NCBI GenBank assembly: GCA_024704765.1
Contig: JAKMXF010000318.1
Span: 1 to 64,000 of the forward strand
Source: Oopsacas minuta
Taxonomy: Eukaryota > Animalia > Porifera
DNA length: 64,000 nt
Direction of reading: 5' to 3'
In this document: positions 9,401 through 53,693 of the stretch, one piece after another
Layout: the number at the start of each line of letters is the position of its first letter
Numbering within the stretch: the stretch's first letter is position 1
Notes under the pieces: generated by a model
The model's database searches: none
What the model was told of the DNA's origin: nothing
The model's input: only the letters and a program-made list of their open reading frames with translations
Made by a program: the position numbers and the translations under genes

Positions 9401-12400
9401 AGTAAGAAATTAGGCGCCAAACGAGAGCTCGAAAGTGATACTGATGGAAGCCAAGAAGAATTATCACAGAATAAGAAAGTGAAAGTTTCTCCAGAATCAC
9501 CAATGCAAATTACTACAATCAATCCAATAAAAATGTGTTTGTTTTCGACTCAATTACGAACCAAAATTACCCCAAAATTCGCAGAAAATAACACTATCGC
9601 TTCAATACTAAGCTTACCTCACCCGAAAACAGGCCACGCGACTACTTTTGCATTAACAACCGATACAAATGAGCTCTGCGAAATAAAAATTTTCTCGAAA
9701 ACATACAAAACAATACTAACTCCAAATAGAATAATTAGCAGACCTAATATCTACTTCATAACACCATTTGATCCGATTTTTATCCTCCTCGCCCTGTTAG
9801 AAACACAAAATTCAGATCATTACTGTTTGATAGAGCAATTGCTCTTCAATACAGAGTTTGAAGATCTTCGAAAAATTATTCCAACTTTCAGTCAATATGT
9901 CATTGAACTTATTTGTGATACGAAAATACATGACGGCCAAATTGCATGCAAGTATAGCAAAGAAAAAACTATGTCAACGTTAGAATCAAAAGTGCAAAGA
10001 GTCGCAGAAAGATTACAAAATCTTGATTCTTTTCAGTCATGTTACAAATCAATTGTTTCAACAAAAGATGGTGCATTAAAGTATGCGATCAGTTTGGTAA
10101 ATGAATACCTAACTAATAAACTATCGGGAGATCTCGCTATACATTTAGGTCTGACAGATTACAGTCATTTAATAGCAGAATGTGAACAAGAAGTTAGAAA
10201 AATGCAAGTCGCTTCTGTTACAGAAGTTGAAACGAAAAAAGGCACAAAGAAACAACCTCCAAAGAAGCAGTCCAGAGCAAAGAAGATGTTAGAGAATACG
10301 GATAAATCTGGAATGAAAAGTTTATCAACTTTCTTTACGAAACCCAAAGATTAGTAGCTATTTGATTGAGTTAATAATTTACCTTAGAATTGGCATATCT
10401 AATCACTTTATTATTAATAAATAATTAATGTAGAGCAGATATATTATTTCATCAAAATGTGTGGTAATATATTTAGAGGTTAATTTATAAATAATTAAGG
10501 CGATTAGGTGGATTGGATAAGATTTATCAAATCGTAGAAACGTAGTATATATTTTATGTATGTAATTACAAAGACTTTTTAATCAAGCACGAGTAATTTT
10601 AAAGTGAAAATATGACCATTTATGCGTTAGATATCAAAATTATTCGGCTGTTCGCACTCACAACTTGACCACATAAGTACACACTAGCATTTAATTATGG
10701 CATCTTCGGGTATATGAAATTGCAATACAAATATTATTCCTCAATACTACACAATACGTATATAGGTGGACTACTAGGCATATGTCATATTTTCAAATTT
10801 CAACATGTACAGTGAAACAAGCTTATAACTAACACGCAGTAGCGAATTCACGGATATAATGAAGTATTCCTACAGACTCGCGGTTATTGCTAATAAATTT
10901 CACCCTTCTGAATAAGTTCCACTACACAAGTGTGATTATTACGAATGAGTTCGCTATAAGCGTGTTCACTCTAAATGCATAGAGATTAATAGTTGGGAAA
11001 ATAATTGGTTCATTTTAGTACAAAACATCAACAAGTATTTTAGAAATTCTAGAGTGACTAAAATACAAATAATAAAAATATAGCTATGGTAATACTCACC
11101 TCTGTATGGCATACAAATGTATGTGTCACAACATTCACCAGATAATGCTGCTGGCATTATCATAACTGCTAACTCATTATCTCTACATGTAGGGATCTCA
11201 CAGGTTGATCTTCTGCACACACATTTTCCAGAAGTTGGACAACAATTTCTGATATTTCCAGGTTTGTAAATTTCTCCTTCTTTACAATCAATTGGATGAT
11301 CTTCGATACAAATTGCATTGTTGCACTCCAAATGGTCCCGATCAATATCTAGAATGAGTAATCGTAATAATATCGCTGATTATCTAATTTGTCAGTTCAG
11401 TTTTACTATGGCATATAATTACATAATAATGTAATTGCATAGAGAAGCTAGTCCAGCTAATTAGTACAAGCTTTTAAACAGGATTCAAATATTATTACAT
11501 ATCTTGGTTACCAAACGGACACTTTGGAATTTAACAACCATTGGATAAATAGAGTATTGATTTTCTCATAATTTCATAGTTGTAGAAAAATGCGTCAACT
11601 CTTAATTATTATTTATTACCTTGGCAAGTGCCTTGTTCTGAATATGGATCATCTCGCATGCAAACTAATGAGTATAAACATCTCCCAAGTCCAGGACCAC
11701 ACGCTTCTCCTACGAATTTGGGACAAACCTAGCGGATTAGAAGGTAAATAACAACAAATAAAATAAGTGTGAAATATGCCATAAATATTCTGAAACCATC
11801 AAATAAACCTAGTTTAAAATCCATCGATATGATAAGTGTGGAAATTAATTACAAATATTTCCGAACACCTTGGAGAAATTTAAACAAATTATAATGGCAA
11901 AAATTAGTTAGGAAGTAAAGTGTCATATCAGAGAGGCCACACTCGTTAAAACCAGATAAAATCAACTTAGTGTAGAATCAACACGCCGTTAGGAAACCTT
12001 AACACTACAAAATGACTTCTTACTTAGATTCTAATTCAAAGGTTTTGTTGCTAGCGTAGCCTGCTTCTCCGATAATTCTATACTAATTGAGGACTACTTA
12101 TATCTGATTTACTAAATGAGCAATGCATTAGAACAATTATAATGCTATTATCATTATTGACTGTTAGGGAATTCAATATATAGGAGGTTCATTTAAATGG
12201 AAATTTTCTATTGTTCTTCAATCAGACTTGAGTACTCTGTGTAGACATTTGTCTGAGGGTAGTTAGATTATTACTACTTAGCTTTAATAATCCCTAATTA
12301 CACATATTTGTATGGTAGTGCAGTAGTAGGATTAATTCGTCTTTATTTTATGCTCGAAAAAACTGAGTAATTTACTTGTAAAATACACTTTTTTTGAAAT

Positions 12401-12781
12401 AATTTTGTTATAATACTATCCTGCAAGAATTGTGAGGGATTTCAAATTTAACTTCGACTCAAAATCAAATGATCAATCCAGCAATATTTATTAGAAATAA
12501 TTATCAAAAACTAATAATACAGCAAAATAATACATTAAAATTGGTTTAGAATGAAACTTTTTGTTAAAATAATACAAACTAATTTTACTTAAAAATATCT
12601 ATCACAAATAATCTAATATGTAACTCACCAAACAACAATTACATTCATCTAATACTTTATTAGATTGCGTACAAGATGAGTCAACTGGAGGACAATTATC
12701 TTCAATACAAGTTGGACAATTCCCTTCAATACAAAATGTATTGTATGTAAGTAAAAACACTATTATTAGTGACAAATACAT
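6417..12781 (-). CDS. CRIM1: CRIM1-like type I membrane protein (signal peptide, IGFBP, Cys-rich and VWC repeats, TM), about 659 aa. Exons 12629-12781, 11620-11728, 11100-11348, 8328-8501, 8057-8271, 7738-7966, 7093-7468, 6417-6891
   Basis: Eight exons, all GT-AG with matching phases, total 1980 nt. Signal peptide MYLSLIIVFLLTYNTFC. IGFBP pattern DECNCCLVCPKFVGEACGPGLGRC. GECCDTYIC repeat. VWC motifs WYPDSCHNCIC..CCPSC and WDDGCQSCTC..CCPKC. TM ILYSITGVFTLILVVIIIIMTVV. The orthology call is from memory of the family. Confidence 0.78.
9380..10354 (+). CDS. RNASEH2B: Ribonuclease H2 subunit B, nested antisense in intron 3 of the CRIM1-like gene
   Basis: Motifs LPHPKTG, ITPFDPIFILL and LESKVQRV, plus a C-terminal PIP box GMKSLSTFF; intronless 324 aa. 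Confidence 0.9.
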   Translation: MTMRITRSKKLGAKRELESDTDGSQEELSQNKKVKVSPESPMQITTINPIKMCLFSTQLRTKITPKFAENNTIASILSLPHPKTGHATTFALTTDTNELCEIKIFSKTYKTILTPNRIISRPNIYFITPFDPIFILLALLETQNSDHYCLIEQLLFNTEFEDLRKIIPTFSQYVIELICDTKIHDGQIACKYSKEKTMSTLESKVQRVAERLQNLDSFQSCYKSIVSTKDGALKYAISLVNEYLTNKLSGDLAIHLGLTDYSHLIAECEQEVRKMQVASVTEVETKKGTKKQPPKKQSRAKKMLENTDKSGMKSLSTFFTKPKD

Positions 12782-35577: not shown

Positions 35578-36027
35578 TTAAACAATCGCATGTTTACGAG
35601 TCATTTCTTTTGCATTCTTATTATACAGCTGTATATCTTGCTTGTATAGCCTAGCTATCTCTGGGACAAGTGGATCTTCAGGATTAGGATCAGATAGTAG
35701 TGAAGAAATAGTCATAAGCATTTTAGAAATTGTAAGAGCAGGTGACCAATCGTGGCCAAGAATGTCTAGAGACATCTGCCCTAAACTAGTAATGTTTGGG
35801 TGATAAATTCGTGTAATAAATTGCACTTTAGGGGGACGAAATGGGTACGAGTTACAGAATTTCATGTCCAAATAGAACACTCCTCCTTCATAAGGAGTGT
35901 CTTTAGGACCCTTTATAGTACCCACCCAATTGAACAGATCTTCATCTCCTCTAGGTTCTGCCGTAATCATCTCCTTTGGATTAGCCCATATATCTTTAAA
36001 CTCTTTCTTCAAACGTTTCGAAGACAT
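35578..36027 (-). CDS. UBE2D-like E2 variant, copy 1 (catalytic Cys replaced by Ser)
   Basis: UBC fold: KRLKKE, GPKDTPYEGGVF, YPFRPPKV, YHPNITSLGQM-S-LDIL, WSPAL. Ser codon TCT at 35770-35772. Start ATG 36027 chosen by homology to copy 2. Confidence 0.9.
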   Translation of the reverse strand: MSSKRLKKEFKDIWANPKEMITAEPRGDEDLFNWVGTIKGPKDTPYEGGVFYLDMKFCNSYPFRPPKVQFITRIYHPNITSLGQMSLDILGHDWSPALTISKMLMTISSLLSDPNPEDPLVPEIARLYKQDIQLYNKNAKEMTRKHAIV

Positions 36028-37108
36028 GCTATATTTACAAAACATATGTAAACTAATGCTCTAAAGATCTACGAAGCGAAATCGAAGCACTCAATTACCT
36101 CAATTATTAAAACATATTTGAAATATAGACATATCAAACAGCAGGTATTTTTGTCAATAGGCTGCAGATTGGAATAAAACATAAAGATTGTGAAGTTACC
36201 TAGCAAGAGAAGTACGTTAGTTAAATATATAAACTACGTATTAACTGGGGCAAAACCAATTGAAAAACCATTGTAGGACCTGATATTATGCAAATATTTG
36301 TTTGTATTATCAGTAAATTCGTATTAACCGTGTTCGTACTAATACTAACGAGGTTCTGCTGTGTAAACAATAATACATGCGCATAATAAGTAAGAATGAA
36401 GTTGTTAAGTGTATTTAATTAGAAATCTTCAATAAAACGCAGATCCAGCTATTTTATAATATTCAGATTTTGCGACAAAATATGATACAGTCCTGTTTGT
36501 TTATAAAAGTGAATTAAATATTGAAAATTCTCCGATGTTTGTATTTGAAAATATTTACATAGCATGTTTCTGAGTCATTTCTTTCGCGTTCTTATTATAC
36601 AGCTGTATATCTTCTTTGTAGAGGTGAGCTATCTCTGGGACAAGCGGATCATCAGGATTAGGATTAGGTAATAGAGACCAAATATGGATGAGAACTTTTA
36701 TAATTGTATAAGCAGGTGACCAATCACTTTCTAGAAATTGTATAGACAGCTGTCCTGAACTATTAATGTGAGGATGATAAATTGGTGTAATAAATCGCAC
36801 TTTAGGGGGACGAAATGGGTAGAAGAGACAGAATTTTATGTCCAAATAGAACACTCCTCCTTCATAAGGAGTGTCTTTAGGACCCTTTATAGTACCCACC
36901 CAATTGTACAGATCTTCATCTCCTCTAGGTTCTGCTGTTACAGGCTCAACTGGGTTTTCCTTTATCTCTTTAAGCTCTTTCTTCAAACGGCTCAAAGACA
37001 TACTCTATATTACAAAACATTTGTAAATTAATGTTCTAGAGATATACGAAGCGGAATCGAAGCACTCAATTACCCCCAATAATTAAAACAAATTTGAAAT
37101 ATAGACAT
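36028..37108. repeat. Duplicated upstream block of about 105 bp: 36028-36133 versus 37002-37108
   Basis: Both blocks read ...ACAAAACAT.TGTAAA.TAATG.TCTA.AGAT.TACGAAGCG.AATCGAAGCACTCAATTACC...TTAAAACA.ATTTGAAATATAGACAT. Confidence 0.8.
36555..37001 (-). CDS. UBE2D-like E2 variant, copy 2 (Cys replaced by Ser; HPN changed to HPH)
   Basis: YHPHINSSGQL-S-IQFLESDWSPAY; TCT at 36744-36746. Confidence 0.9.
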   Translation of the reverse strand: MSLSRLKKELKEIKENPVEPVTAEPRGDEDLYNWVGTIKGPKDTPYEGGVFYLDIKFCLFYPFRPPKVRFITPIYHPHINSSGQLSIQFLESDWSPAYTIIKVLIHIWSLLPNPNPDDPLVPEIAHLYKEDIQLYNKNAKEMTQKHAM

Positions 37109-37514
37109 ACTAGCCGACAGACGGTCAAAATTTGTTATATCAGGAGTTCGTGTTAACAAGAGTAATACCTAATGAATAACAACTGTAGAGACCTGATTTT
37201 GTGTTAATTTTTGTCCGTCTAATCTGTGGAAATTCGTATTAACCGTGTTCGTAATACAAAGTTCTACTGTCTGTATATTCCATATCAATCTAAATATGTA
37301 CGTAACAGATAATTCACTAAAATGTTTAGTATAATCAAGGTGTACGACAGAAAAGCACTGGGAAACTTCAGTAACTATAAAAGACATCTTTGAAAAGCAA
37401 ATTATACAATTACAATTTACAAATAGTATAAAACAGCAACCTTATTGCTGTGGTAAAATAAGTATCAAAATTCACATAACATGTTTGTAAAATTCCGCAT
37501 TCAATACACCATAT

Positions 37515-37997
37515 TCAAACTGCATGTTTAAGAGTCATTTCCCTCGCAGTTTCGTCATACAATTGTCTATCTTCTCTATAAAGTCTACCCATATCAGCTA
37601 AAATGGGATCATCAGGATTAGGATTAGCGAGTAGAGATGAAATAGCTGTAAGAAGAACAGGGATAGTAACTGTAGATCCCCAACCAGATGGTAAAATATT
37701 ATTAACAGATACTTCTCCTTCTTTGGCAATGTTTGGATGATAGATTGGGGTAATAAATTCTATTTTTGGAGGAAGCACGGGATATGAAGCAGGAAAGTTC
37801 AAATTCACATAAAACATTCCCCCTTCGTAAGGAGAGTCCTTTGGACCTTTTATGGTGGCAACCCATGTGTACATTTCATTGTTTTCATCTCCTCTTGGTT
37901 CTGCAGTCTCCATTTCCATTGGGTTAGCCATCATATATGTTAACTCCTTTTTTAATCTGTTTAATGATACTTTTGATGTATCGAGACTACACCCCAT
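37515..37997 (-). CDS. UBE2D-like E2 variant, copy 3 (Cys replaced by Ser; most divergent)
   Basis: YHPNIAKEGEV-S-VNNILPSGW; TCT at 37707-37709; N-terminal MGC extension. Confidence 0.88.
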   Translation of the reverse strand: MGCSLDTSKVSLNRLKKELTYMMANPMEMETAEPRGDENNEMYTWVATIKGPKDSPYEGGMFYVNLNFPASYPVLPPKIEFITPIYHPNIAKEGEVSVNNILPSGWGSTVTIPVLLTAISSLLANPNPDDPILADMGRLYREDRQLYDETAREMTLKHAV

Positions 37998-38528
37998 CTG
38001 TATAATATACTACTAATATATGTAATATGATTTCAGTATTTACTACGAGCAGCTAGTGACGATAGGAATTAAATTTATCATATTTAGCCTATACAAGAGG
38101 AAATCCGTTTTGGCTCTAAATGCATATGAGTATTGTTGAAAACATTTTGCTCTAATTTTACAGAGACCATATGAAAGAAATTGCAACTGTTCTCTGGTAG
38201 TAGCATAAAATCCGAGTTTATTTAACTTCATGAAACTACTTAACATACACAAAAATCCATTTCATTATCCATGGTATATAATAAATGAGAAGTGCAGTAT
38301 TTGATCAGTCCATAGATTGAATACAACATGACCAAATATAGCTATACGTATTCTATAGAATCTATAGTATAGATAAATAATATAATTCTCATTAAAATAA
38401 GAATCAAATATTGAAAATATAATAAATAAGAGATGAAAAGTAATTTTTCTGTAGACTAGGGTCTATAATAGTAGAATAGTGAGTACTATAAAGGTTAAGT
38501 GAAATTTCGAGATTATTAAATAGTCCAC

Positions 38529-41500
38529 TTAAGAAGTATGGTAATGTAAACACATCCATTTTCCATCAAAGTTCTTCCATACCCTAGTTTCTGGGATATT
38601 TACACTTACATATTTCCCATCAACATCAACATACATAATCTGTTTGGTATAAGAAATACAAGCACCATTCATTCCTATCATATGTACAATTGGATTATTA
38701 ACAGACACACGTTGACCTTTGAACATAGGTAATTCGGCTGGTATTATATTAGTACAATCTGGAGCAGATAATTGACTGTAGAGTTCTGTGTTGTTATAAA
38801 TCTTTGCTTCTGTGATGCTCTGTGTAACAGCTATGACGTCAACAATGAAATCTGCCTCATAATGCCGGAGATCTTCGTCTGGGACATTTGTAGGCATTTT
38901 CTTGGATAATTTTTTAATATTCGTAGATAATTCAAACACAGTAGTTTCAGGATTCTCAGTAATACTGCTTGGTATCTTGAGTAGACAATTTCCATCGTCT
39001 TTAGTGCCTTCTGTTATCAATCTTTTGAATTTGTTTGTCATCATCACAGTACGACCTAGAGTTTTCCATTTACGTCTAGCCTTATTGAACTCTTTCAACC
39101 CATCAATCGTTCTGGATCGGTGCAATCTTGCTGGTACAGTATCGCGTTTAAATACCCAGGGGTGTTTAAGAACTTGTCTAGCAGTAATACGCTGTACTGG
39201 ATCAAAAACAAGCATTTTAGAGATTAAATCTTTTGCTTGTGGAGTGACGTCATTCCATTCTTCGTACCCAAAGAAATCGAACTTCCCTTTGGAGAGGATA
39301 TTCTTAACAGCCCTAGTGTCTGTTTGTGGATAAGGCATATAACCTACCAATAAAATGTATAGGAGAATCCCACATGCCCAGATATCTCCATTTTTGGTGT
39401 AGTACCTATTTTCAAACACTTCAGGAGAAATGTAGCAAGGAGTTCCGGCCATCTCATGATGAATTAGTTTATCAGATTCCAATTCGATTGCTAATCCAAA
39501 GTCTGTGAGTTTTACATCTTTAGGTTCTTCAAAGCTTGTTAAGAGCAAATTCTCCGGCTTGATATCCCTAAGAGATGCAAATCAATCTGCGGAGACATCG
39601 CTGTATCGATTGTTTAATTATTCTAATTTAGTATTTTAGCATTCAAAAGTATCAAGTTAGATTGTACTATAATCAAAGGCGTATCATTTTAATGAAGACA
39701 GGTACAAAATTAAGTAGATATGAAACTGGCATGGCTCCCTACGTATAAAGTGTAGAGAGATGTCACAGAGAGAGGGAATTACCTTGCTGAAAGGATGTCC
39801 ACAAACTACTGGTTATTGTACATAACTTTTACAAAGAAAATTACAAGACTTATATTCTACAATATTGACTGATTAATTAGAAATCAAAACGTGATATTGG
39901 AGGAGGGATTCGTTTATGATATATAATTCATTTGTCAATAATCCAGGAATCTGAGGAGTTCATTTGCAATACTGGGATTCTGAGATTTGGAATTGAATTC
40001 GGGAAAATATTCGTTAGTTATCTATAGAAGTTCAATATACCTAGAATATATATTTCAGATATGCTAAACTCCATCATACTTCTTCTATGAATAATTCTGA
40101 ATACTTTTAGGAATATCCAAATGGAAGATGGAATATTAATATTAATTAAATCTAGGGAAATAGTTGCATGAATTTCCCCAGAGATGATGATGATGAAATA
40201 TACGTATAAATTCAGAATTATTTTTTAATATTTTAAAGAAACTTACAATTTCTATTTTTGTTTTATGGGAAAACTAATAGTAATTTTATGTACAAAAGAA
40301 AGGTAATACATAAAAATAAACAAAAATAAGTGAATGGGAAAAATGTTTGTTTTACAGAAGTGTAACTAGGGTAAATCATGAAGAATGTAAGTGAACACAT
40401 TTCCAAACATCACCATTATTCTCCCAAAGGCAAGTTTCAAGTGTTTGATGCGTCATATGTGTATTTTCTTCATTAACATATTGAATTAACTTTGAATAGG
40501 AAATGCAAGCACCGGTTGAACCTATTTTCTTAACTCTCGGATTAATAATAGTTACTTGAACTGTATCACCGAAATTAATATTCAAATCAAGCTCAAATTT
40601 CGTAAAATTCCCAGTACAAATTGAACCACAAGTTTTTGAATCATTCATGGCCATAACTTTACAAAAGTTAGCTGTTAGCGAGATAATTTCATTCAAAAAG
40701 TCTTCATCAAGACTGCCAACTTTTGTTAGCATCGGCAAGCTAACATTCCCAGAGACTTTCCTTTGGCTATCTTGTGGTTTTCCAATTGTATTATCTGATT
40801 TGTGTTTGTCATTAAGAAGCATACCGAATCGTTGTGAAACCATTGTACTAATAATAGCACCCTTTAGCTTACGTCGAGCGTTAAACTTTTTCAAACCTTG
40901 AATGGTGTTCTGATGGTGCAATTTCGAAGCAAACTCTTCTCTATAATTAATCCATGGATGGTTTAAAGCTTCTCTAGCAGAAATACGCTTGCTTTGATCA
41001 GTTTTGAGCAGTTGATTAATCAGAGATTTGGCTTCGTCAGTTATTGAATCCCATTCTGGTGAATAAAATTCATATTTTCCTTCAGAGATTATTTTTGAGA
41101 GAACTTTCTCATTATCATCCCAAAAAGGTGGATAACCAACTAACAAGATGTATAAGATTACCCCGCATGCCCATACATCAACAGGTTTTCCATAAATTTC
41201 CTTATTCACTATTTCAGGAGCAAAGTAGCCTAATGTACCAGCAATTTTGTGGTAACCAAGAACGTCTTCTGGAATCCATAATGCTAATGCGAAATTCCCA
41301 AGTTTGATATCCGAGTTTGCTTCTTGGGTTTTGAGTAGTAGATTCTCAGGTTTGATATCCCTATTGGAAGATTGATCAAAAACAAAACTCAATATTTTTG
41401 GAATTTTCTTACAGTGAGAAACTATTAAGCTACTAATTCATTAAATTGAAATTTGATAAGATATTTTTCCAAAAAATTCTATCTATTTCTAACTCAGTTA

Positions 41501-44500
41501 TTCACACACCAAATTTGAGGAAAGCAACATTAAACAAAATTAGAACTAAACTATTGCCTGATTCCCACTGAGTCGAAAGGAACTTAAGCTCATAAATAGC
41601 TTGTAAAATAATTAAATGTAAATTAATACGACAAGGAATAACAGCATAATAAGAAACAATTACTTTAAAAGCATTGAAAGTTAAAAACAATTAAGCAATA
41701 GATACTAGACTGTAAGCATAATATATTGTTACTTGAAGTAACGAAAAGTTATTAGTTCATTATAAGATTATATTAACTAGGATACGCGTGTAGCTCATTT
41801 TGTGTTTATTATCCTTACATATGCTAGCTAATTACAAATCACTAGACAGGGAAAATCAGTATAATCTAACCTTTACAGTAAGGCAAGAATTGTACACAAA
41901 TTTCAGTTATAGTTACTTTGAAAATATTTGAATGAAATATTACTGTCGAAAGCGAATATTTTGCCAAGCAAAATGCACTAGAAAAGTGTCAATAAACCCA
42001 ACGAGTTTTGTATATATTATGGAGAAAGAAGGACAATCGAGGAGGCAAAACGTGGAGGTAATTGAACCCGTCCGATTTCGACCGAATAATCATTTAAGAA
42101 CTGTTAGAATAAAATAAGAAACAAATCAAATAACCAACAATGATAGTGAACTACTAAAACGCCAAGATAATATATATTATACGTAAATGAATAATTATAC
42201 AAATCTTCTCATACAATAATCCTATCGATAACATGTGTACTGCCACTTTAGATTGATGAGTTCATTCTTACATCAACAAGTGTTGAAAATTAAAACGCAG
42301 AGACAAGAATACCAGTTGATACTTGAATTATGTTAATTCTAGTATCAGTGTGCAGGTGAATATTCTAGTAGGCATCATGATAATTTCAATACTAATGATA
42401 AACTGTACTAGAGTTGAGTTCTCAAGTTGTGTTGATTTTCAGTATCATTACGTAATGAATATAATAAACAGCAGATAGCTGCAGTAGGGGTATCACCGCC
42501 TATAACCACGAGGTATGCTAGGTGATCTCAATTCCATTATCTTTATTTTCAAGAAATTCATTTTAGCCTGCTTTACTTAATCCTTGGACTTACAAATTGA
42601 AATCATCGTTAAAATCAACCACGTGGGTTACTGGATAGTTAATTCTTTTGCAATATTTCATTGACATGGTATAACTGTTTATAGCTATTGTGAGTTCAGA
42701 ATATTCAGGCTTATGTAGCGCGGATTTAGGCTCATTTTTTGAACTAATATTTACCTAAGAGTACGAAAGACTCCTATGTCGTAATGTAAAATGTATAGTC
42801 TAGGAATCTAAGCGTATGAAAAATATTAGAATACACTCTTAGGCTGTCAGTACATGAATGAAACACTGTCAGATAATTATAAGTGAATCAGAATGAAATT
42901 CACAGGCAGTATATCTCCTTAGATCCTCTTAAAATTCGCCATTCTCAATCCTCTCGTATCCTCACTTTTTGCCAATTTATTCGAATATTTATATAACAAA
43001 TCGGCTAACCTGATGATAAAGATTATTATTACTATTCCTCATAAAATAGAGTTCTCATAGAGTTTATACACAATTTTAAGTATGCAATGAATATTAATGA
43101 TTACTAACCTCACTTTATTTATGAAATTATACTAATTCAATTAGTGAATTCATCTAATGAATAAATAGCAATTTTAAGCAAATCAACAGGTTGTCTGTAA
43201 AGATAATTCATTAAATCTACGTCTATAGATGTATACTATTCTTCAGCTGTCTCAATCACCCAATATGGTTACTGTAATTAATCTGTCTCGCACTCCATTT
43301 AATGGATCATTTCCATCAATTCAACTCATTAGATAGAATAATGCACTGTATAATATCAAAATCATATTACCATATGGTATCATCTGACGTAATTAAAGGA
43401 ATGTATCATGTATGTGATTGTAATTGCCTCAAATGATACTATGGTTAAATTGCACAATATGAAGGTGTGGTTAGAAAAATACGATTCAGTACTTTCCATA
43501 CATTAAATGTAAATAGCTACGGACATTATAAATCCTGAAAGTTAATCAAATCCCTTGTTACTCAATATGTCATTGCCACGTATATTACGCAATATACTAT
43601 TAATTTCAATTGTACTATTTTAGTTCCTATATGAGGATGCAGGCGGTAATATCATTATTATGTATTATAGAAGGATTAACATTAGAATTGGAGTTACCTA
43701 CCATTATTTGTGGGTATCACAGGTGGTGGTGTATAAATAAAATCTGCTGATGTGAAAAATAAGAAAAATGCATGTTTTAGGTTTTAATTTCTTGTATAAA
43801 TATGTAAAGTTCATAGAAAAGTAATCACAAAGCAATGCTTGTAGGATGTAAAAAATATCCAATTGTAATCAACCCTCGGGGAAAGTATACGAGAGAGATC
43901 TTTGAGAGGAAAATTAGTACCCAAAATTAAGGATATTAATAAGATAAATTAACAGAGATTCCATTAATAGTAGTGGACAAATTCTTTGGAAATATATGAT
44001 GGCATTAAAATGTATAATCCACTTAATATGCACAGCTAAATATAGATATTATTGAAATTATCATCAGAGCAATTAATATTGCAATTTTTTGTTATCAAAA
44101 TACGCTTACTTTTTGTCAAGTTTGTAATAATTATATAACGTGTATAAATGGCATAATAAGGTAGTTTTCTGACTATTGACTGATATCGAATAATCGATAT
44201 TTTCGGAAATTCGATGATTTGCAAACACATTAAGTCTTCTAAATTATCGATTAAGCCTCATAAACAGACATCTTACTCCAGCATAAACTATCTAAGGATA
44301 CGAGAAATTCCAACATGAATTCCATGTTTAATATCTCAGTGAATCGAGGAAATGCCTTTTTGAAGGTTTCAAAATAAGGTTAATTTTCGCGAGAATTGCC
44401 GATTAACTTTACGTAGAAGAACTAAAGAATCTAATCTAAATGTATTGTAATTATACACGAATTATACACTAGTTGATAGCTGATATAACTTAAGAATTGT

Positions 44501-47500
44501 GTTAGCAAGAAAAATGCATACTGCTCCAACTTCTATTAATCATGTTTTGCGTGGTTGGTGGTGAGAGAAAAGTGCCTTGATCCGCATCTGTTATAGGAGA
44601 GTTTAAAACAGATCGAAGATAAAAGTAGAAAACTTTTAAATCAACAAAATTTTCAACTTTCAGCTGATGCCAATAATCTAAACATTTTCTCAAGAATGTT
44701 ACATATAATACTTTTGGTAATTGATAATTAGATTTGAGGTTAATATGAAGGAAAATCGGTGAAATATCTAATGAATCATATTTGTGAGTTTAAGAACATT
44801 CATAAGTTCGAAAATAATAGATACGGGATATGTGTATTTTTGTTGAAAATAGCAATGCCCACCCATTAGAACAAAGCCATGTTTGAATTTTCTTTGGACA
44901 ATAAAAGTCAAGGGAACTTTTTGAAGCGAACGAAATCTAAAAATCATATGATTTTTCGGCCAAAATAACCACAATGAACGAACTCTCATAGAAAAATTAA
45001 AATCATATAAATTCAATTCACAAAGGTATAAAAGGTGCATAGGAACAGATAACTAACTTCCAGAACAAAAGAAACGGAATATACTGAGAATATAAATCAC
45101 TGAATGTGAATAATCAGTTATAAGAATCCTAATGATAAACTATAAGGAATCATATCCGAGCAGTAAGGCACTGAGGTAAAGACATTGGCTTCTAACATCT
45201 GACAGGTTGATACAGATCACACAGAGAAGACGTTATACATGTGCAAACGGGCGTTTGAATCATGTTAATCATGTTAATGTCAATGAAAAGCGTATAGATA
45301 TTGTGTATGCTAATTTAGAATAATAATAATAATAACAATCTTTAACGCTTGGATTATATTACTAAACATTGGTTTGAAATCAGAGGAATGCTATTATTAT
45401 TATTATTGAAATAATGCTAATCAAAGAATTGAATTATCTATTCGGATAGTACAGCCACAAAAATCACAGTAAAATAGGTTAGAAATACGTATTTTAAACA
45501 AAGAAAACAAAATAAAACAAAGTATTATAATTCTACAATTGATCTGAAATAATAATCAAATTACTGGTGTGTTATCTGTGAAATATTGTGTGTCTATGAA
45601 TACCATAAAATTCGCTTAATAAGGGTATGCAGGTTGTACTAAAAATATCTTGCAGTCAGTATTAACAACATATTTTGACAATCTGAATAAGTATATTCCA
45701 GTGCATTTCCTTGAGGTCTGTGGTCCATTTTCAAGGTGTTTGCAGTAATATTTTATACAAAAATATTGTACTTTAAGATGGTATGTCATGCCGCTTGTAC
45801 TTTTTGTAGAAAGTGTCGAATATAATACGTATCATGATATTATACATAATCTGAATATTTTACAGTCTTCAAAAATTACGTTCTAATATACGCCCAAAAG
45901 GCAGTTTAAAATTTGTTATTTCAGAAAGAAAGAGTCAAACCAGATCTATCATAAATGAAATATTATACTTTACAACAGCAAGTTAGTCAACACCTAAAAC
46001 AAATTCAAATATGTGTACTTCCTACATTTCTTACAAACCAAAGTTCATGTGTTGCCGAAGCTAATCTCACAAGAGACGTCCCCTGGTTCAAGTAAAAGTT
46101 CAAATTGTGAATTAATTGTATTCTAATAGAAGCGAACATGTTGAAATGCATGATGATAATAAAAAATTAGCCAGATTCGGTGGAATTATACAGAATAATA
46201 TTAGTATGCTTTAAGATAAAAATCTTCTGAGAATACATAACTTGTTCTGTCTACAGCTGTAACGAAACATTGACACGATTCATACATTTCTTCTGTTTGT
46301 GATCTCATGTTGTAAATTTCTTCCTTTATTTTGGAAATATTCGTTAGTGTTTCGTTTGATTTTTTCTCGATTCCTTTCCTCATTGCGACTGTTTGTTTCC
46401 AGAATAATTGTGTGTCTTCATCTTCTTCTCCTCCTGGGACACGAACAACATCGTCATAGAAATAAAACTGATCGACATTTGCTGTACTGGGTTCTTCTAC
46501 TGTTTCTTTATACTTTTTTTCGTTCAATTTTTGTGTTAAGAATGGAATAAATGTGAGTGAAGCAGTATTTCTTATAACTCTGCCAACGCGAGACATATTG
46601 AATAATATTGGTGATGATTTTTGTGAAAGATATATTTTAATATTCAACAGAAAACTGCTTGCTTATATAGTAAACCAATTCTATGTGTTTGTGCACTGAA
46701 CCAACTCTATGAAGTGCTTATAAGTCAGTTATGATGAAAGTTGGAATTGAATTGAGAAGTATTGAAACATAAAGTTTACTATAGTTATACTGAAGTTCGT
46801 CATTAACTAATTAGGATATAACAATATGTTTTCGATGTTGAAATAGACAAAGTAATAACTGCCTAGTAAGATATAAAATGGGGGGTGGGGGTGGGGGTGG
46901 GGAGTGATAATAGTATGGGTTCCACATTGTTAATTATTTGTATTAGAAAAGTACTCACTTTATAAATATACAAGCATGGACATTTATAATGTACTAATAC
47001 GTACAATCTCTTGTGTTCTTAGTTGGTCGATCTTCAAAGTCAATTACATAAGTATACCAACAGCTTAAATATTATTCAGATTCTTACAATTTACTGTATA
47101 AACTATTCCGCGTTGTCTACAGCTAGTATTTAATTTTTTCGGCCTAGCATATGAGCCTTGCGTAACGAGTATTCTACAAATATTTCCAGATCTACGATAT
47201 CAATATTAGACAAGCACTACATAGATACGTAGTTGGATTTTCATAGCTTGGGCATTATCCTTGATGATTAATTAAATATAATTTACTAATTTGGGTATAG
47301 GTCATTGTAAATATTACGTTTATGATTAGTAGTACAGGTTTAAAGACGATTTATTTCTTAAATATTCGAGTTGCATGCCAGTCTATATTGTCACGTTTTT
47401 CTGCAGCTAGAAGTTGTCAGAATATTTTCTGAACATTGTAAACTAGCAAGCCAAAATAAAAATGAATACTAATATCACGCTGAGTTCAGTAAACTCTCGA

Positions 47501-50500: not shown

Positions 50501-52413
50501 TATTCAAACATCAAGTGGTAATGCTTAACACTATGTTCTCATAAGCATATATATAGTATACGTATATCTAGTCATTATGTTCGTTAGCTTAATAACCAGA
50601 TATAAATTGTAAGAAAAGATAAATGTACCTCAACACACATACACCTGTTTATCAACTGATAGAAAGAACAAAGCAATAAATTAGCTTACTTGATAACTTC
50701 GTATCCAATACTTATGAGATTAAGAAATGTATACATGCTACTGAAATACTGTAAGGTAGTAATCAGATAAGACATACACACTAGGATTGTGCGTATTATT
50801 TGCTTCCCGAAGGGATACGTCTTATCTGAGCCTAATGTATGGTTAAACGCGAATATTTTGAATACAAATGTTAGAAAATTATCATAGTATATTAGCTCAG
50901 TCCTGTCTAGCAATTTTTCACGAATGATATTAATCATGTGATAGTGTTGGTTAGTTGCATCACCCTCTGAATAGGGCAATTCACTGGTGGGCGTATCTAT
51001 CATATTACACAATTAGTGTATAGCTATCTATCTCGTAAGACAGACAGATTTAACCATGAGACATTACAAATATCCTCATATGAGACATTATTCAAGTAGG
51101 ATTTCTAAAGTAACAAATGGGAATATTAATGGGAAATATACGCTGTAGAATATCCTCTAAGCAATTGATATTACAAAGATATTATTGATTGCTAAATAAT
51201 ATTATTAATGATATATCCCTTGTAGATTCACATATTGGAACTGAAATAAGGAAATGGAGCATGTATGAAGCATTCATAAAGCTAACGTTTTAGAAATAAG
51301 ATCACTGTATCAGGGAAACATTGCTGTACAAAATGTGGCCTACATTGTAATATGCTTGAAATAAGGAATTCTACATACGAATAAACCACAATTTCAATAA
51401 TACGTTGTTTGAATGTAAATGGATAAATCACCTGTGAATAATGTTCTTATCATGACAATATGCAACTGCATCAAGTATCTGCTGTATACATTTACTAGCT
51501 TCAGATTCTGAGTAATATTCTCTCTTTACAATATCTTCAAATAACTCACCCCCAGTGACCAAATCAAATATCATATAGTACTGAATGTCATCTTGAAATA
51601 CGTTATGAAGACGTACAATATGAGGATGCTATGGAAAGAAATTGATTCAAATTATTTGTTACACCAATGGTATTAGCATAAATTAGTATATTACGTCATT
51701 TGCTTTCGCAATGGTTATTGATTAAATGTAAATTTATACCATTCAGATCCTCTCAAATAAAATCCTATACCCCATGGAACATTCTATAATTCAAACATTC
51801 ACCTTTTCCCAAGTTCTATAATTACAGATATAGCATATATCCTGCTGACAATATCGGCAGTAGAAATATACATAATACTTGTCTATATAACTGCGGTATT
51901 GAAATTTTCATAAAAATCTTCAAAAAGTGTCTACTTATCAAAATTAATCACGATTAAATTCTGCTTCATTTCAATACGCAAAATAATTCAATTAATAATG
52001 AATTGTATATTACAACCCAGCACAGCTTGATAAGAGGAGGTTATACTAGAACACAAGATTTGAATTAACTATTATATTACTTATGTCAGCAGAATACGTA
52101 CGTTTAATTAAGCACTTTAGAAGGATAATTAATTGAAAAGAACGGAATAATAGTTAGTGTATTATCCAATGAATATACATAGAAATTGTATTACCTTAAG
52201 CTGTGAACAGATTTGAGTCTCGTTTTCAATTCTTGAACTCAATACTCTACTTCTAATTATCTTAACCGCGAATTCATCTTTTGTCTGCTTATCTCGACAC
52301 TTTTTGACAATTCCGAACGTTCCTTGTCCCAGCGTCTCTAGAGTATCGAACTTTTCTAAGAATCCAGTTTGGATTGGGACTGATAGCTTGAGACCAGACT
52401 TTGATGACGTCAT
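38529..52413 (-). CDS. CAMK2: CaMKII-like kinase, isoform B (484 aa): join 52195-52413, 51432-51628, 38529-39567
   Basis: Exon 1: [16 protein letters not shown]. Exon 2: [36 protein letters not shown]|gt (phase 2). Distal terminal exon begins ag|G-GAT-ATC-AAG (RDIKPEN), with DFG, HRSRT and a hub domain ([20 protein letters not shown]). Confidence 0.82.
40376..52413 (-). CDS. CAMK2: CaMKII-like isoform A (466 aa, DFG changed to NFA): join 52195-52413, 51432-51628, 40376-41360
   Basis: Proximal terminal exon begins ag|G-GAT-ATC-AAA (RDIKPEN), with [23 protein letters not shown] and a hub domain ([20 protein letters not shown]). Same phase-2 junction as isoform B. Confidence 0.8.
46201..51012 (-). 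pseudogene. Possible decayed TRP(A)-like channel gene inside the long CaMKII intron
   Basis: Ordered minus-strand fragments resembling TRP segments: S1/S2-like at 50686-51012; S4-S5-linker-like [21 protein letters not shown] at 49621-49701; S6-like [17 protein letters not shown] at about 47282-47350, preceded by an in-frame TAA; TRP-helix-like [14 protein letters not shown] at about 47208-47268; coiled-coil tail at 46201-46647. By-eye similarity only. Confidence 0.3.
46880..46902 (+). other. Predicted G-quadruplex, G6-T-G5-T-G5-T-G4
   Basis: GGGGGGTGGGGGTGGGGGTGGGG seen directly in AT-rich surroundings. Confidence 0.6.
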
Positions 52414-52832: not shown

Positions 52833-53693
52833 TCAACTAATGTATTGTTCTCGTCTCATATCAATGCGTATAACGCTAGCATCAATTAACACGAATACAT
52901 AGCCATAATAATCTATAGCCAATCCCTGTTGGAAACGACCTTTTTCACCAAACAAATATTCCGAATACACATTCTCTATTAATCTACCTTCCCAGTTATA
53001 AACCATTAAAATTCCTTCTCTATAGTTTACTATATTCAATTCTTCGCGTGCTGGATGAATACCTATGAACTGAATCTTCTTAATTAATGGATTGAAATGA
53101 TTTCTCGGTCTTATATCGCTTCCTAATCCGGGGTAAATTGTTGTTAAACTCGTAGAAATGTCAAATTTATCGAGCATTACTATAGAATTGGGGTCTCTTA
53201 AAAGTATGAAAATTTCAAAACTCCCAGACTTGATGTCTTGAGGTTCAGAACACAAATCGATTATATAATTTTTGCATGGTGTATAACAGTATACAAGTTT
53301 ATTCCATCTTGCACAAAGAAATAAAGCTAATTCTGTGCTTGCTTCATCTACTAAAACACCCATTATATCTTTAAATGTATAGATTTTATCTTGTATTCTA
53401 ATTTCTTGAAATGCAGTTATGAAAAATCCATCTAGTGTGAATATTTTGACCGATCCTATTCCAGATTTACTAATACAACCAACAAACAAGAAATTATCAT
53501 ATATAGATATACCAGAACATGTACAGTTATCTTCTAATCCCTGTTCTATCGTTTGGATGTGTTCAGATTTCTGTGAAAATACATGTATACCTCGGTCACT
53601 TGTAATGTACATTTGTGCATTTACTCTTGATACATCTAGAGTGCAACAGTCTTTGTAATCGATTACAGCCAGTAGTTCAACTTTTCGATTCAT
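52833..53693 (-). CDS. NHL/6-bladed beta-propeller-like protein, 286 aa
   Basis: Repeats CSGISIYDNFLFVG, IMGVLVDE, QQGLAIDYYGYVFVL; no catalytic motif recognised. Confidence 0.65.
   Translation of the reverse strand: MNRKVELLAVIDYKDCCTLDVSRVNAQMYITSDRGIHVFSQKSEHIQTIEQGLEDNCTCSGISIYDNFLFVGCISKSGIGSVKIFTLDGFFITAFQEIRIQDKIYTFKDIMGVLVDEASTELALFLCARWNKLVYCYTPCKNYIIDLCSEPQDIKSGSFEIFILLRDPNSIVMLDKFDISTSLTTIYPGLGSDIRPRNHFNPLIKKIQFIGIHPAREELNIVNYREGILMVYNWEGRLIENVYSEYLFGEKGRFQQGLAIDYYGYVFVLIDASVIRIDMRREQYIS

Follow-up and report, generated by a model that had tools for sequence, protein, structure and literature searches.

A CaMKII locus of the glass sponge Oopsacas minuta with two putative alternative last exons, one encoding a conserved form that lacks the DFG aspartate

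Results

Gene structure of the locus

The minus strand of the window, the 64-kb stretch of Oopsacas minuta DNA that was analysed (64,000 nucleotides), carries two ~1-kb ORFs, termed exon A and exon B, each of which encodes the CaMKII stretch that begins with HRD and finishes with the hub. Both ORFs match the Pfam profiles Pkinase and CaMKII_AD. Among solved structures, chains of the CaMKII holoenzyme (CaMKII alpha, beta and delta) match best, with 258 bits for A and 217 for B; the kinase domain of each belongs to the CAMK group and lies closest to CaMKII. A protein of O. minuta encoded on JAKMXF010000318.1 matches exon A at 100% identity, and exons A and B are 34-36% identical to each other. 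A search directly 5' of each ORF and in the interval separating A from B found no exons encoding the kinase N-lobe. tblastn detected only one N-lobe in the window, at 52413..51432 on the same strand as A and B. It consists of two exons, lies 10-12 kb upstream of exons A and B and has 43-58% identity to Nematostella CaMKII. The components of the locus are as follows (a slash marks the splice boundary).

52195..52413, minus strand: CaMKII exon 1, ATG at 52413, 73 codons (tblastn with Nematostella CaMKII, sequence reading and translation)
51432..51628, minus strand: CaMKII exon 2, 65 codons plus 2 nt, ending in NIIH + AG, donor AG/GTGATT, phase 2
46201..46596, minus strand: nested 131-aa ORF inside the 10-kb intron, on the same strand and not part of CaMKII
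40376..41360, minus strand: terminal exon A, acceptor CCAATAG/G, encoding C-lobe, regulatory segment, linker, hub and stop
38529..39567, minus strand: terminal exon B, acceptor CTCTTAG/G in the same phase as A, encoding C-lobe, regulatory segment, linker, hub and stop

Exon 1 encodes the Gly-rich loop (GQGTFG), the VAIK-type Lys (FAVKII) and the alpha-C Glu; the ATG is preceded, 4 nt away, by an AG acceptor, the donor is AAG/GTAATA, and its orthologues are intact in assemblies L002, L003 and L021. The exon 2 donor (CAC AG/GT) is kept in L002, L003, L004 and L021. The acceptors TAG/G of exon A (41361/41360) and exon B (39568/39567) are conserved, share the same phase and fit this donor, and the donor, like the sequence around both acceptors, is preserved in four further assemblies. 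Both terminal exons begin with G GAT ATC, and splicing exon 2 to either gives an identical 13-residue junction peptide. The apparent 'NRD' and 'LRD' that precede the two ORFs are intron sequence; because His-Arg is supplied by the N-lobe exon, HRD is intact in both spliced forms, which are predicted to be isoforms of 466 aa (exons 1 and 2 with A) and 484 aa (exons 1 and 2 with B). Each terminal exon has its own stop (40376 in A, 38529 in B), with ATTAAA or AATAAA downstream. The locus has the organisation of alternative last exons, namely a common donor, two phase-compatible acceptors, and a separate stop and poly(A) signal for each exon.

A usable start codon is missing from both terminal exons. 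The exon B frame is closed four codons upstream in all four intact copies, and exon A has no in-frame upstream ATG in four of five species; in L002, exon A has no ATG whatever, upstream or internal. We therefore rejected A and B as stand-alone ORFs. The layout is kept in four other glass-sponge-like assemblies, and the gene order (N-lobe, nested ORF, A, B, E2 genes) is the same in L002-L005 and L021. The nested ORF has no Pfam match, and its position is conserved in five of five assemblies. The first-pass annotation had proposed two splice forms of one gene. This is largely supported: the acceptor phases match the N-lobe donor, the terminal exons lack start codons, and synteny extends across five assemblies, which together argue that A and B are two alternative last exons of a single CaMKII gene.

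Exon A lacks the DFG aspartate and keeps a canonical calmodulin helix

The first-pass annotation had described exon A as a dead kinase with a near-canonical calmodulin site and exon B as a live kinase with an altered one. The motifs behind this description were all recovered.

41288..41296, minus strand: NFA replacing DFG, exon A
40904..40918, minus strand: HHQNT, T286-equivalent site of exon A, Thr kept and His for Arg at -3
40841..40885, minus strand: canonical 15-residue calmodulin helix of exon A (alignment to human CaMKII alpha and orthologues)
39495..39503, minus strand: DFG, exon B, conserved in four of four intact B copies
39108..39122, minus strand: HRSRT, T286-equivalent site of exon B, Arg at -3 kept, HR(S/T)xT in orthologues
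39027..39089, minus strand: B-type 21-residue regulatory helix, hydrophobic W1, V/I8 and F14, net charge +9

Exon A is intact in five assemblies. Its DFG site reads NFA in one copy, NFG in three and NFE in one (L005), with Asn fixed in 5/5, and all 114 non-sponge CaMKII matches carry DFG. At the T286-equivalent site, exon A has HHQNT where the canonical sequence is HRQET, and the HHQxT pattern is found in every one of the five A copies. The remaining catalytic residues (Lys, Glu, the HRD Asp and the catalytic-loop Asn) are invariant, even in the one species that has A alone, a pattern that residual or unconventional activity would also explain. The DFG Asp binds Mg2+, and autophosphorylation of T286 needs Arg at -3. 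If a pseudokinase is taken as a kinase fold without at least one of the VAIK Lys, the HRD Asp and the DFG Asp, isoform A qualifies, its DFG Asp being absent in all five assemblies. Since an Asp-to-Asn change in DFG kills other kinases when engineered, phosphate transfer by isoform A would be expected to be poor or absent.

Exon B keeps its catalytic residues and has a different regulatory helix

The altered helix of exon B had been interpreted as one half of a complementary degeneration, a reading that its conservation does not support. The W..V/I..F pattern is conserved among B orthologues and fits the Trp-anchored 1-8-14 spacing that is typical of the calmodulin segments of CaMKI and MLCK. 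The B helix thus looks like a calmodulin-binding pattern whose class has changed rather than one that has degraded. Both helices are predicted to bind calmodulin, and isoform B is probably the one that is enzymatically active and remains under calmodulin control. The same A and B substitutions recur in the orthologues of four other assemblies, which indicates that these motif changes are not chance features.

Exon B is intact in L001-L004 and is a pseudogene in L005, from the assembly ERZ25766962: its reading frame is broken by several frameshifts and stops, 24 nt are deleted, and the hub contains an insertion. On the same contig, the N-lobe and exon A are intact. Because L005 keeps a constrained N-lobe and A while B is a pseudogene, A does not appear to depend on B. 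An obligate division of labour between the two forms is not supported, given this species. Directly 5' of exon B lies a nearly invariant intronic element:

39568..39600, minus strand: intronic element GCGATGTCTCCGCAGATTGATTTGCATCTCTTAG, nearly invariant in five assemblies

The element holds an out-of-frame ATG and a TTGAT motif, a possible branch point, which also precedes exon A.

Both isoforms carry a shortened CaMKII hub

The hub drives assembly of the CaMKII holoenzyme, which has 12-14 subunits, and each terminal exon ends in a hub.

40379..40714, minus strand: hub of isoform A, 112 aa (PF08332, alignment, AlphaFold, Foldseek)
38532..38873, minus strand: hub of isoform B, 114 aa, with the same ~19-residue deletion as A

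The claim that both forms keep the hub stood at the level of fold (AlphaFold and Foldseek) but not of full length. PF08332 identified the CaMKII hub domain in A (E-value 2e-13) and B (1.8e-14), with only profile positions 60-125 matched in either. In the alignment, both hubs are ~19 residues shorter than canonical ones and miss the GNLVEGxDFHxFYFxN segment. AlphaFold modelled the hubs with pLDDT values of 90.8 (A) and 92 (B) from alignments that included canonical hubs, and the top Foldseek matches were CaMKII hubs with TMq of 0.82-0.89 (0.82-0.87 for A). Isoform A is predicted to bind Ca2+/calmodulin and to oligomerise via its hub. The A and B hubs are ~29% identical to each other.

Both exons are under purifying selection

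dN/dS is quoted for unsaturated pairs. For exon 2 it was 0.01-0.03. The C-lobe gave 0.11-0.13 in A and 0.15 in B, with dN of 0.037-0.055 in A compared to 0.074 in B. Hub values were 0.09-0.18 overall (A 0.09-0.18, B 0.15), and those of the linker were 0.5-0.7. Both exons are therefore under purifying selection, and on these values we rejected the idea that either is a pseudogene in O. minuta. Neutral evolution of exon A, named in the first-pass annotation as an outcome that would count against it, was not observed. These results support exon A as a conserved form without the DFG Asp rather than a decaying copy. In the phylogeny, the A clade and the B clade each received 100% support and the species order was congruent. 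The best explanation is a tandem duplication of the terminal exon that predates the divergence of the five glass-sponge lineages sampled.

RNA-like contigs cover both exons and carry a foreign leader

Four sequencing runs of one sample were available, none labelled as RNA; only one of them, X4, looks RNA-like, as judged by TruSeq adaptors and leader joints. Contigs from X4 cover exons A and B at a depth of 900-1350 compared to 85-315 on the flanks. Upstream of both exons these contigs carry the same foreign leader.

41433..41434, minus strand: AG leader joint upstream of A, RNA-like contig with foreign leader ending in TCTTCATAAAAAACTTAC, 72 nt 5' of the coding start
39623..39624, minus strand: AG leader joint upstream of B, same leader, 55 nt 5' of the coding start

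The leader sequence was absent from the window and from the fetched orthologous loci. The B joint lies ~50 nt downstream of the ATTAAA at 39693, the poly(A) signal that follows A. In the X4 contigs across 38300-41700, the 5' joints among the 13 of 27 loose ends listed were to the leader only, with none at the cis acceptors. It follows from these joints, 72 nt and 55 nt 5' of the two coding starts, that the N-lobe is absent from at least some A and B RNAs. RNA depth declines gradually upstream of B, and to the extent that one depth figure per contig can indicate, a leader-joined or unspliced form may make up a large share there. The common leader is joined upstream of both exons, yet no in-frame start follows it as would be expected of trans-spliced cistrons.

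From the splice-site sequences we infer that the N-lobe is cis-spliced to A and to B. A protein word search with exon 2 returned no O. minuta fragment spanning the junction. The predicted 27-nt junction of exon 2 with A or B gave 15 matches in metagenomes, with the matched stretch shown for 12 of the 15. The three matches whose flanks were read, L006, L015 and L016, belong to unrelated kinases that share IIHRDIKPE; L012, L014 and L020 come from contigs labelled human-gut metagenome.

Discussion

We favour, at a probability of roughly 0.58, a model in which one CaMKII gene has two alternative last exons, a DFG-Asn structural form (A) and a probably active form (B). Two short 5' exons encode the N-lobe, and one giant exon, covering the catalytic-loop Asp to the stop, would have been tandemly duplicated to give A and B. 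Each acceptor would complete His-Arg-Asp with the N-lobe donor, and each exon would use its own stop and poly(A) signal. Isoform A would be a calmodulin-responsive structural or scaffolding CaMKII, canonical except for the DFG Asp-to-Asn and -3 Arg-to-His changes. Isoform B has kept all catalytic residues and R-x-x-T and has swapped its calmodulin helix for a Trp-anchored 1-8-14-type motif. The two need not share one particle, and the N-lobe and A persist in the species in which B died.

Isoform A might instead retain weak or unconventional activity, for example with an altered metal requirement as in CASK, so that the gene would encode two differently regulated active kinases. In favour of this reading, every species with A, the B-less one among them, has an unchanged 10-residue stretch, APE region and shared Lys, Glu and Gly-loop, and the C-lobe of A has evolved more slowly than that of B; CASK, whose CaMK-group domain also lacks DFG, is among the structural relatives found. 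However, the residue after Asn-Phe varies (A, G or E, with a bulky Glu in L005), which points to relaxed constraint on the loop, and replacing this Asp by Asn is how kinases are usually inactivated by design. The lost -3 Arg further fits a form that no longer autophosphorylates. We consider an active isoform A improbable, although marginally the likeliest of the alternatives.

Slightly less probable still is the arrangement proposed in the first-pass annotation, in which A and B co-assemble via their hubs after complementary degeneration, the dead A sensing calmodulin or scaffolding and B catalysing. An identical N-lobe and a CaMKII-fold hub in both forms, coverage of both exons by RNA-like contigs of the same sample and long retention of both exons in four lineages would all suit such mixed holoenzymes. 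Mammalian CaMKII paralogues are known to co-assemble, but their hub identity is far above the ~29% between the A and B hubs. Without the -3 Arg at its site, A would not readily be phosphorylated by B, and the B helix is conserved and motif-like rather than degraded. In L005, B is a pseudogene while the N-lobe and A stay strongly constrained, which argues that A is independent of B.

The weakest alternative is that A and B are independent spliced-leader trans-spliced units without the N-lobe, their RNAs being non-coding or encoding truncated hub-containing products. It draws on the leader shared by both exons in X4 and absent from the window, the B leader acceptor placed ~50 nt past the poly(A) signal of A, the separate NCBI genes for the N-lobe and A, and published spliced-leader trans-splicing in glass sponges (PMC10282587, PMC7986045). 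We regard it as very unlikely: no start is conserved, exon A of L002 lacks any ATG, and in the O. minuta leader-A RNA 10 out-of-frame ATGs precede any in-frame one; purifying selection is in force from the very first post-acceptor codon, including a 10-residue stretch and DFG/NFx, and frame-breaking indels lie directly 5' of the acceptors between close species; and a 139-aa N-lobe by itself would have no function, yet its dN/dS is 0.01-0.03.

Under the preferred model of alternative last exons, the locus can be set beside several known systems. Canonical metazoan CaMKII (human CAMK2A-D, C. elegans UNC-43) has the same order of kinase, autoinhibitory/calmodulin segment, variable linker and C-terminal hub, and it provides the best sequence and fold matches, with a calmodulin helix almost identical to that of isoform A. 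Known CaMKIIs generate isoforms through paralogous genes and short linker exons, whereas in Oopsacas the whole C-lobe-to-hub block is duplicated as alternative last exons. Unlike canonical CaMKII, Oopsacas has a form, A, without the DFG Asp, and both of its hubs are ~19 residues short. The CaMK domain of CASK, a CAMK-group domain near CaMKII that scores 170-177 bits to exon A, resembles isoform A in having lost the metal-binding DFG Asp and kept a calmodulin-binding segment, and it has a scaffolding role of the kind proposed for A. CASK has GFG and has lost the catalytic-loop Asn, and its Mg-independent activity is established. However, CASK is encoded by its own MAGUK gene and has no hub, whereas isoform A has a hub, the catalytic-loop Asn and an N-lobe in common with a canonical sister.

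AlphaKAP, like isoform A, is a CaMKII gene product with a hub that is thought to be structural or targeting rather than catalytic, the role proposed here for A. It has no kinase domain and arises from an internal promoter, in contrast to isoform A, whose kinase fold is complete and constrained, with one key catalytic residue replaced. Engineered kinase-dead CaMKII retains calmodulin and partner binding and assembly with a point change in the active site, and isoform A is likened to it on sequence grounds; the engineered proteins are laboratory mutants, whereas isoform A is natural and long conserved, with its inactivity predicted. The B helix, (R/Q)KWK..G..(V/I)....FK(K/R)L, resembles CaMKI- and MLCK-type segments in motif pattern only, with a Trp anchor and hydrophobics at +7 and +13; unlike in those kinases, the rest of B is CaMKII-like, including the hub. 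Our literature searches found no paper linking CaMKII with Oopsacas, nor one linking CaMKII with both a pseudokinase and a hub domain.

A current question in neuroscience is whether CaMKII works chiefly as an enzyme or as a scaffold triggered by calmodulin; to our knowledge, it has so far been addressed only with engineered kinase-dead mutants. A conserved DFG-Asn isoform would amount to an evolutionary experiment on this question and a natural test of non-enzymatic roles. Isoform A shares its N-lobe with a canonical sister and outlives that sister in one lineage, which provides two ready-made proteins to compare. Glass sponges are syncytial animals that conduct calcium action potentials. Tentatively, they may long have encoded a structural-only CaMKII, calmodulin-sensing, hub-forming and catalytically silent, from the same gene as the enzymatic one, with the silent form the more indispensable of the two because in one lineage the catalytic exon was lost and the silent one retained. 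If true, this would be natural evidence that a non-enzymatic role of CaMKII is ancient and can stand alone, and the 12-kb choice between last exons, competing with spliced-leader addition, would constitute a regulatory switch. Duplication of a giant intron-free last exon that encodes half a kinase domain, the regulatory segment and the hub would also be an unusual route to isoform diversity.

The locus as read here amends the public annotation, in which the gene falls into three parts and exon B is missing: NCBI lists the N-lobe and exon A as separate genes and leaves exon B unannotated. Reading through the exon 2 donor gives Arg and then TGA, which accounts for the separate 139-aa 'gene'. The RNA-seq mapping of the published annotation limited introns to 5 kb (PMC10280926), and for this reason the N-lobe, A and B were never joined.

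A candidate CaMKII gene with two alternative last exons

A tblastn search of the window with a Nematostella CaMKII query detected only one N-lobe, located on the same strand as two ORFs whose closest solved relatives are CaMKII holoenzyme chains, with alignments spanning the HRD motif to the final hub residue. Sequence identity between the two ORFs is only 34%. In a database comparison exon A matched, at 100% identity, a protein that NCBI lists for the glass sponge Oopsacas minuta (contig JAKMXF010000318.1), the species from which the window comes. The gene parts are as follows.

52413..52195, - strand: CaMKII exon 1, beginning at ATG, with an AG acceptor 4 nt 5' of the ATG
51628..51432, - strand: CaMKII exon 2, ending ...AAC ATT ATT CAC AG/GTGATT
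41360, - strand: start of exon A, acceptor ...CCAATAG/G GAT ATC AAA
40376..41392, - strand: ORF around exon A, second half of a protein kinase domain plus a CaMKII association domain
39567, - strand: start of exon B, acceptor ...CTCTTAG/G GAT ATC AAG
38529..39548, - strand: ORF around exon B, second half of a protein kinase domain plus a CaMKII association domain

Joining exon 2 to either exon A or exon B completes an arginine codon (AG+G), so that the HRD motif is intact in both forms, and translation predicts products of 466 aa with A (isoform A) and 484 aa with B (isoform B). The locus was compared with four ENA metagenome-style assemblies (ERZ25071281, ERZ25069837, ERZ25072740 and ERZ25766962), in all of which the order of the N-lobe, a nested 131-aa ORF, A, B, E2 genes and further common neighbours is the same. 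Because of this synteny the four were taken to be related glass sponges. Across assemblies the donor of exon 2 is conserved, as are the sequence around both acceptors and a TTGAT motif ~17 nt 5' of each acceptor. A 33-nt intronic element directly before exon B (39568-39600, - strand) is almost invariant in five assemblies with saturated synonymous sites. An out-of-frame ATG within it would start a uORF of 17-19 codons in a leader-joined RNA; candidate roles for the element are those of branch point, splicing regulator and uORF.

The frame of exon B is shut four codons 5' of the acceptor, without an ATG, in all four intact copies. In four of the five species no ATG lies in frame upstream of exon A, and in one assembly (L002) this exon has no ATG at all, upstream or internal. 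The two most closely related species differ by 2-nt indels 10-40 nt 5' of the acceptors, and the exons themselves stay in frame. As judged from these reading frames, neither exon is able to stand alone. In a maximum-likelihood tree the A clade, the B clade and the eumetazoan CaMKIIs formed three well-supported groups, with matching species order within A and B; the A/B duplication is therefore older than the split of these five lineages. The best-supported reading of the locus is a single predicted CaMKII gene whose two alternative last exons are ancient.

The public annotation of JAKMXF010000318.1 splits this gene and omits exon B. A stand-alone NCBI N-lobe "gene" of 139 aa (51428-51674) ends where exon 2 is read past its donor, through an Arg and into an intronic TGA, and one of 331 aa (40376-41674) is exon A with an invented MLLK first exon. 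The 10- and 12-kb CaMKII introns were never bridged because RNA-seq mapping in the genome paper capped introns at 5 kb (PMC10280926).

Predicted catalytic states of the two isoforms

The motifs reported by the first-pass annotation are present at the positions it gave. Exon A carries NFA in place of DFG (41296..41288), HHQNT at the autophosphorylation site (40918..40904) and a calmodulin helix (40885..40841); exon B carries DFG (39503..39495), HRSRT (39122..39108) and a calmodulin-type helix from 39089. Across five species the Asn of the exon A triad is fixed and the Gly position drifts (NFA, NFG, NFG, NFG and NFE). HHQxT is also fixed, the calmodulin helix is canonical throughout, and the APE region and another 10-residue stretch are invariant. 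DFG is present in all 114 non-sponge CaMKIIs among the best 120 database matches to exon A. Replacing the DFG Asp with Asn is the usual way to engineer a kinase-dead mutant of many kinases, and a drifting Gly in this triad is unusual in active kinases. Together with the lost -3 Arg, these two features suggest that isoform A, in which the DFG-Asn is conserved, carries out little or no phosphotransfer. Its canonical calmodulin helix, docking-surface residues and hub suggest a structural, calmodulin-responsive role. All other catalytic residues of A are invariant, including in the species lacking B, a pattern compatible with some unconventional catalytic activity in A; we regard this alternative as less likely but credible.

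In intact copies of exon B, DFG and HR(S/T)xT are fixed. The helix follows the consensus (R/Q)KWK.(L/F)G..(V/I)(M/I)(M/L)(T/S)..FK(K/R)L across species, where position 1 is Trp, position 8 V/I and position 14 F; its net charge in O. minuta is +9. The 1-8-14 spacing is that of classical calmodulin targets, and the KWK recalls that of CaMKI. The exon B helix appears to have switched motif class rather than decayed. With all catalytic residues, the R-x-x-T site and a different yet conserved calmodulin-type helix, isoform B is probably an active enzyme.

A literature search (CaMKII with Oopsacas; CaMKII with pseudokinase and hub domain) found no paper on such a form. CaMKII and pseudokinases are already known; what appears to be new is a conserved CaMKII form, predicted to be alternatively spliced and kinase-dead, derived from duplication of a giant last exon.

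Selection on exon A and loss of exon B in one lineage

The dS between O. minuta and the other assemblies exceeds 1 and is saturated or nearly so, and dN/dS was estimated by the Nei-Gojobori method in two unsaturated species pairs.

Table. dN/dS by region.
C-lobe: A, 0.11-0.13; B, 0.15
Regulatory segment: A, 0.04-0.17; B, 0.46
Hub: A, 0.09-0.18; B, 0.15
Linker: A, 0.58-0.68; B, 0.54
N-lobe exon 2 (shared): 0.01-0.03

The C-lobe changes more slowly in A than in B. The values for exon A (C-lobe, 0.11-0.13; hub, 0.09-0.18) therefore exclude neutral evolution of this exon, and the first-pass proposal is not contradicted on that count.

In ERZ25766962, region B (11300-12700) contains several 1-nt deletions, in-frame stops and one 24-nt deletion; a T/C-rich, microsatellite-like run replaces the DFG region, and an insertion, possibly a repeat, lies within the hub (CAGGGGTTCTCAAAGTGGGCC...GGGGGGCCAC...). 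On the same contig the two N-lobe exons are intact with correct splice sites, exon A is intact with the triad NFE, and N-lobe exon 2 has a dN/dS of 0.016 against the sister species. The N-lobe is therefore tied functionally to A, and this lineage shows, at the level of gene sequence, that A can do without B.

Hub domains

The claim that both isoforms keep the hub stands for the fold and not for the full length. AlphaFold hub models, built on an alignment including canonical hubs, gave pLDDT values of 90.8 and 92.2, and their best PDB matches were CaMKII hubs (TMq 0.82-0.89), so the modelled fold is kept in A and B. Both hubs lack ~19 residues of canonical hubs (GNLVEGxDFHxFYFxN..., alignment hub columns about 54-74). 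Annotated tick CaMKII isoforms include some (P0012, P0015, P0026 and P0069 of the alignment) that lack the same segment, which suggests that a separable exon encodes it; a processed transcript without this segment might be the origin of the giant sponge exon. Complementary degeneration of a duplicated exon, with mixed A/B holoenzymes, is improbable given that the B helix is conserved, B was lost in one lineage and the two hubs are only about 29% identical.

Representation in RNA and a foreign leader

Four sequencing runs were found, all from one sample. Depth was flat in three, and Nextera adaptors were present in two of these. TruSeq adaptors mark the fourth, X4, whose contigs have a depth of 900-1350 on exons A and B; for the intron, the spacer between A and B and the region downstream of B the depth is 85-315. 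The genome project libraries comprise RNA-seq, DNA-seq, Nextera mate-pair and PacBio (PMC10280926). X4 was taken as RNA or RNA-rich, and both exons are therefore represented in RNA.

Among the loose ends listed, X4 contigs share a foreign leader, ...TCTTCATAAAAAACTTAC (then AG), at AG 41434/41433 and AG 39624/39623, and these are the only 5' joints of A and B seen there. They lie 72 nt (A) and 55 nt (B) upstream of the coding starts, with no start codon after either. The leader was absent from the window when searched for; spliced-leader trans-splicing is reported from glass sponges (PMC10282587, PMC7986045). As read, RNAs of this leader-joined kind could not code for the conserved C-lobe; in the leader-A RNA, ten out-of-frame ATGs precede the first in-frame ATG. 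The exon B leader site lies ~50 nt beyond a poly(A) signal downstream of A. These RNAs are read here as by-products that arise when the leader is trans-spliced to acceptors left unpaired; they might instead contribute to the selection of A or B. X4 depth falls abruptly 5' of exon A (2976 to 234 per bin) and gradually 5' of exon B (1402, 927, 493, 315), a hint that joining at the cis acceptor predominates for A and is less frequent for B; this is given little weight because contig depth is a poor measure.

Neighbouring ORFs

The nested 131-aa ORF (46201-46596, - strand) lies inside the 10-kb CaMKII intron. All five assemblies have it in the corresponding position, with lengths of 131-134 aa; a Pfam search gave no match. 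A 286-aa ORF (52833-53693, - strand) directly upstream of the CaMKII start likewise had no Pfam match and has syntenic ORFs of 283-294 aa in the other assemblies. Three tandem intronless UBE2D-like E2 genes (35578-37997, - strand) have Ser in place of the catalytic Cys (MSLDIL, LSIQFL and VSVNNIL), and two or three such E2 ORFs also lie downstream of exon B in the other assemblies.
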